Below, piece by piece: positions 1,915 to 6,990 of a stretch of DNA of 64,000 nucleotides; positions within the stretch are counted from its first letter, which is position 1; the number at the start of each line of letters is the position of its first letter. The position numbers were made by a program, and so were the translations under genes. The DNA lies in assembly GCA_964057225.1 (NCBI GenBank), contig OZ059894.1:12214001-12278000 (forward strand), given 5' to 3'. This DNA is from Auanema rhodensis. Its lineage: Eukaryota > Animalia > Nematoda. The notes under the pieces were generated by a model. That model did no database searches. It had not been told where the DNA came from and saw only the letters and a program-made list of their open reading frames with translations.

Positions 1915-1961
1915 TACTACACGATTTTCATTCTTATTGTTACATTCTTTCCCTGAGGGAA

Positions 1962-2110
1962 TGGGCCGTTCCCGCCAGCAGTGCAAGAGCGGGTCGACCC
2001 GTGAGGTGGAGCTAGCAAGCCAGCATCTACCTCAAGTCTCAAAAATCGGTTAACCTTATTGTGAACCAATGGAACACATATCGAAGGTTAATTCGATAAG
2101 AACGATTACT
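1962..2110 (-). pseudogene. U2: 3' part (nt 36-184) of the interrupted U2 snRNA gene
   Basis: Identical to the intact copies; contains stems IIa and IIb, the Sm site and stems III and IV, but lacks the first 35 nt. Confidence 0.95.
2050..2110 (-). repeat. 61-bp direct repeat (U2 nt 36-96), copy at the element 3' side
   Basis: ttaaccttattgtg...gaacgattact is identical to 5832-5892. Confidence 0.95.
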
Positions 2111-2500
2111 GGTTTATTGAATAACTAATGTTATGATACAATAAATAACCAATAAAAAAGAGCCCAGAATCGGGGAGACGGTATTACCTGTACAACTTAA
2201 AACAGCAAGTGATTAAAAAGTACAAAATAAAACACATTACCAACAGAGGCTAAAACGACTCAAGAGTCGGGGGAGTGGGTTAAAAAAAGTAATGAATAAC
2301 AAAAAAATGAATAATAAAGCAGAACAGTGAAAAGTAAATATCAAGTGCCGCTATGATCAAACAATTTGAGTGCCTACGGCAATGGTGTTAAAAATAAACA
2401 ACAAAATACATGTACCAATGAAGGTCAGAAAGAGAGAAAGAAAAAAGACAAAAATAAGTAATACAAAAAGTAAATATATTACAATCAAATTACAAACAAG
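2111..2500 (-). other. Retrotransposon 3' UTR (390 nt, U-rich on the sense strand) ending AATAAACC, no poly(A) tail
   Basis: Lies between the stop codon and the U2 junction; tttatt at 2113-2118 is AATAAA on the minus strand. Confidence 0.85.
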
Positions 2501-5500
2501 TCAATGGATAATTTCTTCTTCATACTGCCTTACACCAGAAACATGTTCCACGTAGATATTCCTGGCCCACTTGATGGTATCGGCGACGACGAGCTTCTCC
2601 ATTAGCCGGTTGTAGTGGCTGCTGATCTTGAGTGATCGGAGGGCTTGTCCGTTGAGCGGGTCCATAGTTCCAAGCATTCCTACGACATACGCTTCTACAC
2701 TAGTCTTATAACCAAGACATTGGTATTGGCTGGCTATGTCAGCATATTTCCTCTCCTTTATCATACGCGCGGCTATCATGGCTTGTCGGCGGTTTTCATA
2801 GCTCACTGTAACATCAACGATACTACAGTGTTTTGCGTCATGATCGACCACTACTATGTCAGGTCGGAGTGTACTATTAATGCCAGGAAGAGGCTGGTTA
2901 GTGTAAACTTCTCCGTTTTTAGGCTCTGGCAGGGCTTTGATAAGACGGTCCACGATGTTGTTGTGGCGGAGTTGGATTGCTCTCGTGTGAAAGTGGCAGT
3001 GTCCAAGAACATGTGCAGCAGTTTCGTTGGGGTAACTACACCTGCGGCACTGTTTGTTTCCTTCTCCGTGTCTTCTACAGCCATTGAGCTGGAGAGTATT
3101 AAGTCGAGCCTTGTGGATGAATCGCCAATCAGCAAACCGTATGAAATCTCCCTTCGCCATAAAGTGATTGGACGCTTTGTTGAGCATTGTGACATCAAAG
3201 ACTTTCCCTTGATCCGGTTTTTGAAGAAGGATCCGAAGGTCTTTCAGCCATAATGCACGTCGCAGGCTTCTGTGGCATAGTGAAGGTGTTAACAGTTGGT
3301 TGTTTAGATTGAGTTCTAAACCACTTTCGAGGCATGTCCAGTTAGCGTTGATGAGTTTTTTGAGTTGACGCATCGCTACTCTTACTCTAGTCCAGATGGA
3401 GGAAACATCAGATGTTTCGGTGTCGAAAATGCCATCAACGGAACCGTTGTAATATGCAGCTGTCTCATCGTTACTGGCTTGACGTTTAATCCTTTTTGAT
3501 GCTACTTTTTTTGAGTCTTGATGCGCAATATCAGCTACCACAAGATCAGATGACTTCAAAAGTTGGTAGGCATGAGTGACTTCACAGACGTCTGACAGGT
3601 GTTGGAGTCGAGAGAGACCAAGTCCGCCGTAGTTAGTTGGCAGGTAGATTGGTTCAGCACTGGCGTTTGGAGGATAGTGCATCCATCTACGGGCACAGCG
3701 TTTGAGTTCTTTGTCAAAGGCGACTAGTTTACTCTTTGGGACGTGGCCATTCGTCATATGAAAATTAAGGCAGGGCATCAGGAAGGTGCGTACTGCGTCA
3801 GCTTTCTGCCATTCAGCCAGTAAGGATTTGTCAATTTTTTCCAAGTGTTGACTCATAATATTCATTGTTGGAACCGCAGACTTATGTAAATGCATTCCAG
3901 TAGGGATTCCCAGGTGGGAGTAGCTGTCAAATTTGCTGAGAGCGGGTAGAGAGCAGCTCTGAAGCATGTATGAGGCTGTTGATATTTTCCCTTTGTCGAT
4001 CGTCAAAGTGGCGCATTTCGCTGGTTTGAAGGTCAAGCCTGTGAAATTAGCCGCATTTGATGCTGCGTCCAACATTTTCTGTAGATCTTCTGATGATGAG
4101 GAGACCAGGGCAAGGTCATCGGCGTACGCTAGCACAGCGATGTTGTTATTGTGTAGCTTATAGCCTGTAGAGGTTTCCAAGATGGTTTTAATTAGAGGTT
4201 CAATGGCAAGGTTGAACAGGATCGGAGATAGTGGGGATCCTTGTAACACACCTGCGTGAACTGGAATGGTCGAAGTGAGTCCGGAGCCTGTCTGGATTAT
4301 TGTAGAGGCATCTGTGTATAGAGCTCGTACTCGGGATATTGAGGCTTCAGCCATTCCTGACCATCTTAGAACGTCTAGCAGAGTTTCGTGTGGCAGCGAT
4401 CCAAAAGCGTTTGCGAGATCAAGCCAAGCAATTGCAATTTTCTCACGTTTACGTTTAGCGTCTGCAATGGTACTTTGCAACAAAAAGTTGTGTTCCATGC
4501 ATCCAGCTTTGGCCACAAAGCCCTTTTGGGAGGGAGAAAGTCTTTTTTCTGCTCTTGCCCATGTTAGCAGTCGATGCGTAAGACAAGCTGAGTACGTCTT
4601 ACCAATTGTGCACGAAAGTGCTATTGGTCGCCAGTTGTTAATGTCAGCTTTATCACCTTTCTTATGGATGAGGACGGTGGTCGACTCTTTCCAGGAAAAA
4701 GGGATGTGTCCTAGCTTGTGTACGGTGTTAAATATCGCTGCTAATATGTGACCTCCTTGGTCAAATTTCTTCCAGTGCGAGTATCGAAGTCCATCAGCTC
4801 CTGGAGCCGTATCGCTGCAACGTCGTATGCGTTCCCAGACTTCCAAAGGGGTGAAAACACCTTCTAATGGGTCGGTACTAGCTGGCAAATCCGGTCTGGT
4901 GACTGTGATGGGGAGGGCTGGGCCTTGACTGCTGTGAACAGAAAGGAAGTGTTTTTCAACCTCTGCAGATGGTATGGTGCAGGTTTCACTTTGTTCTCCG
5001 AGCAGTTGTCGAAAGGCTTTCTTCTTGTTGGCCCTCCAAAGCTTCTGGATCTTCATCGCCTGGGTTTTTTGGTCTTTCTCAGGTTGTGTGTGTGGTCGGC
5101 GCCTTTGTCGGAAGTTGGGAACTTTGATCATAATGTCAAGAGACTTTCTGATTGTGTCTACCAACTCTTCCAGGACCTGCTCGAGCTCACTTTTGCACAC
5201 TACCTTTTTAATTCTATCCACCCAAATATTTTCAGAGTTTCTATTTGGATCAGGGTCGGCAAAAGATGGTTCTGTACTCGGAACCCTGATCTCGTTGAAT
5301 ATTTCACTCTCTCGCGGAAGGGGGGAAACTTCGGCCTCTGGGGACAAGTCCAGAATTGGGGCCTCAAACAAGCGTACCGTTGATGGAGATCCTTGTTCCT
5401 GTCCACTGGATGATGTTTCCTCCATTGTACGCTCCTCCACGGGCGGGGTGGTCGTCCTTGTGCCTGGTGGGCGGGTGTTCCTGATCCTCCGCAATATAGG

Positions 5501-5779
5501 GCGGGAACTGGGCTCTCTCGGAGATAGAGGTGAGATCACCACAGTTTCCTCTATGATGCGGAGGCATCCTTCAGCTTTTTTCTGATGGCTTTTAACGGCC
5601 TTCAGATTGCTGGTGAGGCCACAGGCACGGCACTCAAATTCTACTCCGACCTCATGTTCTCTCCGAAGATGGCGGACGAGACCATTGTGGTCTGAGTAGG
5701 ATCGCGGAATAGGAGCGCAGATTGAACAAGAAAAAGGGCTCTGAAGAGGCACCTTCAGCTTGTAAAGCCCTTGCTCCAT
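2501..5779 (-). CDS. 1092-aa retrotransposon protein: C2H2 and CCHC zinc fingers, P/S/E-rich linker, reverse transcriptase, CCHC zinc knuckle, PD-(D/E)xK restriction-like endonuclease
   Basis: Zinc fingers CSIC..HLRREH and CRAC..H..C. RT motifs APGADG, LIHKKGD..NWRPIAL, QKGF, WLDLANAFGSLPH, GVLQGSPLSPILFN, YADD, GLTFKPAKC, YSHLG. Knuckle CRRCSYPNETAAHVLGHC. RLE motifs RHN, RPDIVV, DVTVSYE, KERKY. The C-terminus DTIKWARNIYVEHVSG resembles Utopia proteins as I recall them. No internal stops. Confidence 0.97.
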   Translation of the reverse strand: MEQGLYKLKVPLQSPFSCSICAPIPRSYSDHNGLVRHLRREHEVGVEFECRACGLTSNLKAVKSHQKKAEGCLRIIEETVVISPLSPREPSSRPILRRIRNTRPPGTRTTTPPVEERTMEETSSSGQEQGSPSTVRLFEAPILDLSPEAEVSPLPRESEIFNEIRVPSTEPSFADPDPNRNSENIWVDRIKKVVCKSELEQVLEELVDTIRKSLDIMIKVPNFRQRRRPHTQPEKDQKTQAMKIQKLWRANKKKAFRQLLGEQSETCTIPSAEVEKHFLSVHSSQGPALPITVTRPDLPASTDPLEGVFTPLEVWERIRRCSDTAPGADGLRYSHWKKFDQGGHILAAIFNTVHKLGHIPFSWKESTTVLIHKKGDKADINNWRPIALSCTIGKTYSACLTHRLLTWARAEKRLSPSQKGFVAKAGCMEHNFLLQSTIADAKRKREKIAIAWLDLANAFGSLPHETLLDVLRWSGMAEASISRVRALYTDASTIIQTGSGLTSTIPVHAGVLQGSPLSPILFNLAIEPLIKTILETSTGYKLHNNNIAVLAYADDLALVSSSSEDLQKMLDAASNAANFTGLTFKPAKCATLTIDKGKISTASYMLQSCSLPALSKFDSYSHLGIPTGMHLHKSAVPTMNIMSQHLEKIDKSLLAEWQKADAVRTFLMPCLNFHMTNGHVPKSKLVAFDKELKRCARRWMHYPPNASAEPIYLPTNYGGLGLSRLQHLSDVCEVTHAYQLLKSSDLVVADIAHQDSKKVASKRIKRQASNDETAAYYNGSVDGIFDTETSDVSSIWTRVRVAMRQLKKLINANWTCLESGLELNLNNQLLTPSLCHRSLRRALWLKDLRILLQKPDQGKVFDVTMLNKASNHFMAKGDFIRFADWRFIHKARLNTLQLNGCRRHGEGNKQCRRCSYPNETAAHVLGHCHFHTRAIQLRHNNIVDRLIKALPEPKNGEVYTNQPLPGINSTLRPDIVVVDHDAKHCSIVDVTVSYENRRQAMIAARMIKERKYADIASQYQCLGYKTSVEAYVVGMLGTMDPLNGQALRSLKISSHYNRLMEKLVVADTIKWARNIYVEHVSGVRQYEEEIIH

Positions 5780-5831
5780 CTCTAGCAGATCTAAAGACTT
5801 ACGTAGTACAGTTGCAATATCGATTTAGCCA
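5780..5831 (-). other. Retrotransposon-specific 5' UTR (52 nt)
   Basis: Non-U2 sequence between U2 nt 96 (5832) and the ATG (5779). Confidence 0.8.
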
Positions 5832-5892
5832 TTAACCTTATTGTGAACCAATGGAACACATATCGAAGGTTAATTCGATAAGAACGATTACT
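5832..5892 (-). repeat. 61-bp direct repeat (U2 nt 36-96), copy at the element 5' side
   Basis: Identical to 2050-2110. Confidence 0.95.
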
Positions 5893-5927
5893 ACACTTTG
5901 ATCTTAGCCAAAAGGCCGAGAAGCGAT
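5832..5927 (-). pseudogene. U2: 5' part (nt 1-96) of the interrupted U2 snRNA gene
   Basis: ATCGCTTCTCGGCCTTTTGGCTAAGATCAAAGTGTAGTA...AAGGTTAA, then element sequence; no Sm site. Confidence 0.95.
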
Positions 5928-6010
5928 ACAGCATAGCCATGAGTATCAAAGACATCAAGCAAATGTATCGTACTTGTTACGAGTGCACTCTCTCATTTGA
6001 ATATAAAAGT
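5928..6010 (-). promoter_or_regulatory. U2 proximal promoter region (positional call; present in every unit)
   Basis: Immediately upstream of U2 +1, where snRNA PSEs lie; no specific motif recognised. Confidence 0.4.
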
Positions 6011-6369
6011 GTGGTTTGACAATCTTGACTGTACAGGTCATAAATGGCTCATATAAACTGTGGATTTACTCAACTTTTGGACTTATTTTTTTCTTATTCG
6101 AAGCGCTGCACTTTTTTCTATTCTTTTTATTCAAATACTTGTATATAGTTTTATATGTACGGTTGCAAAGTTTCCGAATATTTTATATATTTTTATACAA
6201 TAATTAGGAGAAGGTTAATACAATGAAATCTCCCAACTTTACAGTGTTTGTATTGCTTACAGTATCTAGAACAACCACTCTTGTAATATTAGAGCACATA
6301 TCAATCAACAACTTTTTCTAGTTATCAAAGCTTTTTTATTTCTTCAAGATATTTCAAATAAAATATAAA

Positions 6370-6729: not shown

Positions 6730-6848
6730 AGCTTACGACACCCGGGATTCCCAAGCCGTCTCCGATCCAAGTACTAACCGGGCCCAACGTTGCTTGACTT
6801 GCCAGATCGGACGGGATGGCGTACTTTCAACGTGGTATGGTCGTAAGC
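6730..6848 (-). rRNA. 5S: 5S rRNA
   Basis: Array copy. Confidence 0.97.
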
Positions 6849-6990
6849 AATGTCATATTCTTCATTATCAGTTATATCACTCTAAATCTTGTTGTTAATA
6901 GATACGACCACAAAGAAAACAACAGGAACAGTAACAATAACAAAAAAAATTTTTTTTTCACCTATGTGTCTAAAGGTTAGCCATGTATCC

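Follow-up and report, generated by a model that had tools for sequence, protein, structure and literature searches.

A U2 snRNA-specific retrotransposon of the nematode Auanema rhodensis that probably carries an inherited U2 leader

The U2 snRNA genes of Auanema rhodensis are interrupted by a non-LTR retrotransposon whose 5'-complete copies are all preceded by U2 sequence ending at nt 96, that is, 57 nt past the point of insertion, and this boundary is absent from the 5'-truncated copies. Such a distribution argues that the U2 repeat around the element is a captured leader rather than the product of a staggered cut. The reading that we consider likely is that the element RNA starts at the host U2 start and is headed by U2 nt 1-96, that insertion takes place at U2 39/40, and that the repeat is a pseudo-duplication of 57 nt inherited from copy to copy.

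The window, i.e., the whole stretch of 64,000 nt that was analysed (C1:12214001-12278000), is part of a tandem array with units of approximately 2.48 kb, each containing one U2 snRNA gene and two 5S rRNA genes, all of them on the minus strand. Intact U2 genes of the window are 190 nt long, and one gene is split into two pieces, nt 1-96 (5927..5832) and nt 36-190 (2110..1956), between which lies an insert of 3721 bp with the same orientation as U2 (Table 1). Given that the 440 nt upstream of the interrupted gene are those of the intact genes, its promoter is in place, and the 300 nt that follow U2 nt 190 are likewise identical to intact units.

Table 1. Features of the interrupted U2 gene, the element and related copies; positions are those of the window unless another locus or the array unit is named
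Feature	Position	Strand	Basis or remark
U2 upstream (promoter) region of the interrupted gene	5928..6367	-	440 nt identical to intact U2 units in the window
U2 nt 1-39, 5' of the true insertion site; target-derived or re-copied from the leader	5889..5927	-	U2 model; nt 39 junctions of truncated copies
U2 nt 40-96, probable element-borne leader, upstream pseudo-TSD copy	5832..5888	-	before element nt 1 in 47/47 5'-complete copies, never before a truncated copy
Element-specific 5' UTR, 52 nt	5780..5831	-	
ORF: N-terminal C2H2 fingers, RT, C-terminal CCHC + RLE (predicted)	2501..5779	-	RVT_1, R2 structure match
3' UTR, terminal letters ...TTCAATAAACC	2111..2500	-	terminal TTCAATAA common to the rider family
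4-nt element tail, AGTA in the window copy	2107..2110	-	
U2 nt 40-190, downstream half of the target; 2050-2106 = downstream pseudo-TSD copy	1956..2106	-	
Rider copies headed by U2 nt 1-79	L025:670-1498 (-); L003, L010, L028-L030, L033		none in the window
Promoter-less event, start nt 1	unit position 498		
Promoter-less event, start nt 1	unit position 899		
Promoter-less event, start nt 1	unit position 1034		via 6 nt filler
Promoter-less event, start nt 2	unit position 475		via about ten extra T
Promoter-less events, start nt 2 (two)			contexts unplaced
Promoter-less event, start nt 3	promoter position -31		

The insert contains one intact ORF of 1092 aa that begins at element nt 53, which agrees with the 52-nt element-specific UTR described in the original prediction. 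The protein has C2H2-like motifs at its N-terminus and an RVT_1 match (E 6e-28), and solved R2 protein structures align to it (E 9e-69) over the RT and over residues 903-1044, where a CRRC...H...C and an RPD...D...E..K stretch (CCHC/RLE) are found. The closest proteins found by similarity, at 38-56% identity, belong to nematodes, a scorpion, Dendroctonus and Daphnia, the last two being listed Utopia hosts. By these features the insert appears to be a Utopia-type, U2-specific, R2-like RLE non-LTR retrotransposon. At least 37 full-length copies with 98-99% identity are present in the genome, all within C1 10.93-12.22 Mb (one array of 1.3 Mb), and the genome search placed every element copy in the U2 array. 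The ORF is whole in 29 of the 30 full-length copies examined, and there are length subfamilies with different 3' tails. When a whole copy and a rider of the family described below were scanned with Rfam at a permissive threshold (E up to 5), which a diverged ribozyme could escape, U2 alone matched, and neither an HDV-like nor any other ribozyme was found.

The repeat that flanks the element was correctly described as a U2 duplication: positions 2050-2110 and 5832-5892 form a 61-nt direct repeat with 100% identity. The upstream U2 piece does end at AAGGTTAA (nt 89-96), complementary to TTAACCTT (nt 55-62), and nt 96 is followed in intact copies by CCG and then by the Sm-type ATTTTTG. The extent of the duplication, on the other hand, stands for the window copy only, since 61 bp is peculiar to it and the general U2 repeat measures 57 bp (nt 40-96). 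This distinction comes from the 3' junctions, of which 39 are distinct and 39/39 continue with ATCGTTC (U2 nt 40 on). They read ...AACC-ATTA-ATCGTTC in 34/39 and ...AACC-ATCGTTC, without the four bases, in 3/39; the remaining ones are a truncated copy with ...AATAA-ATCGTTC and the window copy, which is alone in having ...AACC-AGTA-ATCGTTC. Because the four bases are ATTA in 34 junctions whereas the target has AGTA, they come with the element rather than from the target, which leaves nt 40-96 (57 nt) as the true U2 duplication and places the insertion site at U2 39/40. This is the canonical Utopia site, directly 3' of GUAGUA; nt 40 of this U2 corresponds to the standard nt 39 because there is one extra A upstream.

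The obvious alternative is that the repeat is a genuine target-site duplication (TSD), in which the endonuclease would, at every insertion, cut the top strand at U2 96/97, 57-61 bp downstream of the bottom-strand nick, so that U2 36/40-96 would be duplicated by repair. The perfect 61-bp repeat of the window copy is what such a duplication would leave, and tandem copies with a spacer of 57+4 nt fit it too. Furthermore, the premise of the original prediction, that RLE elements usually make short TSDs or none, was too strong, as long ones have been described for CRE, R4, R8 and R9 (PMC3636483) and one of 20 bp for reptile Utopia (PMC4640811). The two readings were compared on the 5' junctions of full-length and truncated copies, by means of exact-pattern and degenerate searches of the whole genome, which read about 20 nt beside an anchor. 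The junction of U2 nt 96 with element nt 1 was found 47 times in exact form, and the marker at element nt 52 was found 47 times at the same places and at a fixed offset; these are not 47 independent events, as many may be DNA-level duplicates within the array. The duplication is therefore neither variable nor missing among the 5'-complete copies, all 47 of which have the nt-96 junction. Further markers matched 50 (nt 700), 55 (nt 1500), 65 (nt 2500), 67 (nt 3282) and 65 times (3' end), a climb toward the 3' end which means that about 20 copies are 5'-truncated, at many different points. Graded 5' truncation is usual for target-primed reverse transcription.

None of these approximately 20 truncated copies is preceded by the nt-96 boundary, and throughout the array the two letters after U2 nt 78-96 are always CC, from U2 nt 97, or TG, from element nt 1, although the degenerate searches would catch about 7/8 of truncated nt-96 junctions (about 19/22 under the TSD model). 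Four of the approximately 20 truncated junctions were read: U2 nt 39 + TGTG + element nt 379 (L031), U2 nt 39 + element nt 3552 (L034), U2 nt 20 + element nt 1726 (L032) and spacer + element nt 1725. These junctions indicate that the top strand is broken at or just upstream of 39/40 and not at 96/97. The TSD explanation is also contradicted by the tail ATTA against the target AGTA, by the riders, whose fixed boundary is a different one (nt 79), and by copies outside the promoter context, which bear U2 1-39 where the flank has no U2. It is thus extremely unlikely, and the captured leader proposed in the original prediction is the reading that agrees with the junctions. As an observation apart, the truncated copies at C1:10941169 and 11156993 start nearly alike (element nt 1725-1727) with different upstream partners (U2 nt 20 and spacer), which may reflect a reverse-transcription pause site or one event that was rearranged later.

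If the leader is inherited, the point at which it begins bears on the start of the template RNA. Among 33 unselected element 5' ends at the loci examined, the U2 piece reaches nt 1-3 in 23 and nt 38-40 in 10, with no leader starting between nt 3 and nt 38. In nine of the ten short cases the 3' end of another element comes immediately before the leader, as a result of tandem or nested insertion into the 39/40 site that the leader itself contains. A whole-genome search for U2 5' ends that lack the usual base at -1 gave nine places, 9/9 of them being leaders of element copies. They correspond to seven independent events, which start at nt 1 (three), nt 2 (three) and nt 3 (one); five of the seven were mapped, to unit positions 475, 498, 899, 1034 and 2446, and the contexts of the other two are unplaced. 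Random deletions would not put seven starts within two bases of the U2 start. All seven would be explained if a cDNA had been extended to the very end of an RNA beginning at U2 +1 and then joined, without homology, to a resected upstream end, and on this evidence the promoter-less starts would be the DNA footprint of a template RNA that begins at the U2 transcription start. The idea that the element is transcribed from the host U2 start is in this way supported, indirectly, by the genomic copies.

A second possibility is that the template RNA starts near U2 nt 38-40, as a result of processing or of an internal start, and that a unit made of U2(40-96) and the element is joined bluntly to nt 39, without homology. 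In both element families the U2 piece does begin exactly at the insertion site, and the break at nt 39 is blunt-like. There is also the tenth short leader (copy L026), which is cut at nt 38 and joined to spacer via 14 nt of filler, with a 1.4-kb upstream deletion; this copy fits either an RNA 5' end near nt 38-40 or a later cut at the leader's own 39/40 site followed by deletion repair. Against such a start, U2 from nt 1-3 is kept in the seven independent promoter-less copies, leader lengths are bimodal and, apart from L026, the 38-40 class is always found behind the 3' end of another element; nor was there a match to any ribozyme family. An RNA start at nt 38-40 is accordingly rated improbable, and the start at U2 +1 is preferred. 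Three small 20-Mb runs of uncertain type, available as contigs only, were compared with positions 2111-5892 (the element and U2 nt 36-96). They contained ORF pieces of 157-241 nt, one contig with intact U2, and rider contigs of 800 nt in which the rider is joined to U2 as far as nt 79; such contigs carry no start, strand or level.

A cycle that would account for these structures can be proposed. The element would have no promoter of its own, and the host U2 promoter would drive an RNA from U2 +1 in which U2(1-96) comes first, followed by the element and its 3' tail; this RNA would probably continue into the downstream U2 piece. Such a chimera may, as the original prediction supposed, escape Sm-core assembly and cap trimethylation. 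A nick at 39/40 would prime reverse transcription, and the top strand would also be broken at or next to 39/40, so that there would be no real stagger. A full-length cDNA would end with the complement of U2 1-96, and we infer that its stretch complementary to U2 1-39 pairs with the U2 sequence left upstream of the break and primes the second strand, which gives a seamless join. The U2 40-96 portion would be copied in as an extra, generating the 57-nt pseudo-TSD that is seen as 61 nt in the window copy. Each cycle would then rebuild both the fusion and a fresh 39/40 target site, from which it follows that tandem copies should be separated by exactly the leader remnant. Tandem copies do lie 57+4 nt apart, the leader rebuilds the target, and the junctions in the normal context are seamless, all of which is in line with the earlier proposal that the fusion is regenerated in each cycle. 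As for the first capture of nt 40-96, a single aberrant insertion would suffice, provided that it was afterwards included in the transcript.

A uniform boundary could in principle be identity by descent and say nothing about mechanism, if one ancient insertion had been spread by unequal crossing-over and gene conversion. All copies do belong to a single array of 1.3 Mb, with 98-99% identity among them, the units of the array hardly differ from one another, and some structures are plainly duplicated, e.g., the inverted pairs at 11.24 and 11.28 Mb. A single insertion would leave unexplained the diversity of contexts (tandem, rider-nested, seven promoter-less breakpoints and a ladder of graded 5' truncations), the length subfamilies with different 3' tails and the intact ORF in 29/30 copies, and is for that reason very unlikely; repeated insertion of a U2-headed element remains the favoured account.

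A non-coding family, here called riders, occupies the same site (U2 39/40). Riders are approximately 790-860 bp long, form at least three subfamilies that are 71-83% alike, and have no ATG ORF of 40 aa or more; they end in ...CTTCAATAA, of which TTCAATAA is common to rider and autonomous element. U2 up to nt 79 always precedes them, with 35 exact junctions in one subfamily and 12 in another, including tandem copies 906 bp apart. This boundary, which is fixed, family-specific and heritable, fits an inherited leader. It also means that the end point after helix IIc, to which the original prediction had drawn attention, is not required. One locus (L033) is a chimera of rider and element whose last 177 nt come from the autonomous element; it had been considered as a truncated element copy joined at U2 nt 40/41, and was rejected as such when the 'AGTAAT' found there turned out to be internal rider sequence. 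Nested arrangements of element and rider leaders were also considered as evidence against a TSD and were dropped, as either order of events fits them.

The short UTR of the element contains a further trace of U2. Element nt 22-50 (window 5782-5810 (-)) is a degenerate antisense copy of U2 nt 19-39 (TACTAC..CTTTAGATCT..TAG), and the same tract also resembles a branch-point-like motif, followed by GTAAGT and, 11 nt ahead of the AUG, by a UUUAG that looks like a 3' splice site. When the leader and UTR are folded together, U2 33-39 pairs with element nt 22-28, in a fold that is only modestly better than shuffles (z -2.5). In a scorpion homologue (L039:2978-2995) there is a perfect 18-nt antisense of U2 19-36 directly before the ATG. 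The homologues of this scorpion (Centruroides) are in tandem, with about 20 nt of U2 between them, starting at nt 39 (L039:2640-2672, 6820-6852), and this piece may be a short version of the U2 head. The short flanks of the metagenome and Diploscapter relatives (L038, L040) contained no U2.

Utopia elements were described as U2 snRNA gene-specific RLE non-LTR retrotransposons (Kojima and Jurka, 2015, PMC4640811), and the Auanema element shares with them a single ORF with N-terminal zinc fingers, RT and, at the C-terminus, another finger and a PD-(D/E)xK endonuclease, an insertion point immediately 3' of GUAGUA (the bases that bind the branch point) with downstream U2 from the equivalent of standard nt 39, the U2 orientation, and tandem copies inside U2 genes (PMC4640811). 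The 5' boundaries of Utopia vary between families, and the flanking repeats were read as staggered-cut TSDs, absent in arthropods and of 20 bp in reptiles (PMC4640811); that study does not discuss transcription or leaders, and the words 'promoter' and 'ribozyme' do not appear in it. Unlike the published elements, the one described here has a repeat of 57 nt that is found in full-length copies only, and its copies outside the promoter context start at U2 +1. Keno elements are also U2-specific and use the same U2 insertion site (PMC4640811), with an apurinic-like (APE) endonuclease instead of the restriction-like one present here.

The closest functional parallel is R2, with which the element has in common a homologous protein, the lack of a promoter of its own and, as we infer for the present case, the use of a host-gene co-transcript as template. 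For R2 RNAs that retain 28S sequence from upstream of the site, annealing of this sequence to the target has been proposed, and their 5' junctions are uniform (Eickbush et al., 2013, PMC3774820). In R2, an HDV-like ribozyme cuts the RNA from the Pol I transcript, and the host sequence that is kept lies upstream of the site, so that no duplication results; here, in contrast, there is no ribozyme family match, the promoter is that of an snRNA gene and the host sequence reaches 57 nt past the insertion site. SLACS and CZAR (CRE clade) are similar in being site-specific RLE elements in a Pol II small-RNA gene, that of the trypanosome spliced-leader RNA, and differ in clade, host gene and site (SL RNA nt 11/12, PMC5814959). 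Transcription of SLACS is reported to start at +1 of the interrupted SL RNA gene (PMC3447711), and CRE elements are flanked by target duplications (PMC3636483). Utopia with variable 5' boundaries, the use of host promoters (R2, SLACS) and long duplications (CRE, R4, R8, R9) are therefore already known; what is new is an inherited U2 head as the source of the repeat, one that runs 57 nt beyond the insertion point, and the traces in the genome of a start at U2 +1.

Genome structure alone indicates how a retrotransposon with a fixed target site can depend on the promoter of an snRNA gene, taking part of the snRNA along and rebuilding with each jump both the promoter fusion and the landing site. 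It also provides a warning: repeats that flank such elements are not automatically staggered-cut TSDs, and published maps of Utopia top-strand cleavage rest on that reading. The array, in which intact copies are numerous, riders occur and footprints are clear, offers a natural system for second-strand priming in R2-like elements. These elements are now under development for gene insertion. Whether a head of host RNA is a general, functional strategy of the lineage and not an accident of one family is more doubtful, and we regard the general version as a tentative idea that is rather unlikely to hold. If it were true, long 'TSDs' of RLE elements in small-RNA genes would be inherited host-promoter leaders, with the 20 bp of reptile Utopia, the U2 piece of about 20 nt between the scorpion copies and the SLACS duplication as candidates; the conserved antisense-U2 tract that precedes the AUG would form, by pairing to the U2 head, an RNA module for retrotransposition or spliceosome avoidance; and non-coding derivatives with a U2 head would have left the array and spread to other chromosomes.

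Several minor observations concern the array itself. Every unit contains a fossil approximately 310 nt downstream of U2 (unit positions ~465-560; window ~1600-1700), made of a rider-like 3' end (...CTACGTCAATAA), then U2 nt 40-78 at 90% identity and then a rider-like 5' start. Two of the promoter-less element copies are joined at most 25 nt from this fossil (unit positions 475 and 498), as if the fossil site were still cut. The part of the array at C1:11.22-11.30 Mb is inverted, with its element copies on the plus strand, and the mirror pairs found there (11242574+/11289407- and 11249740+/11282237-) indicate a large inverted duplication.

U2-derived sequence is also found outside the array. 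The 13 bases of U2 nt 67-79 occur on C3-C8 at approximately 85 places (e.g., C3:7454462, 7454517), where they are followed by at least three other recurrent sequences, one of which consists of 55-56-bp tandem units ending in ATCGTT (U2 nt 40-45); these places may represent U2-headed mini-elements or a U2-derived satellite that has spread. Variant U2 copies are present on C8 (10321024-10321058, 10328017-10328051; 10318812, 10330261, 5695105), and in an inverted pair of them GUAGUA is directly followed by a different sequence (TAACCTCAGAAATAT...), a candidate for another insertion at that point.
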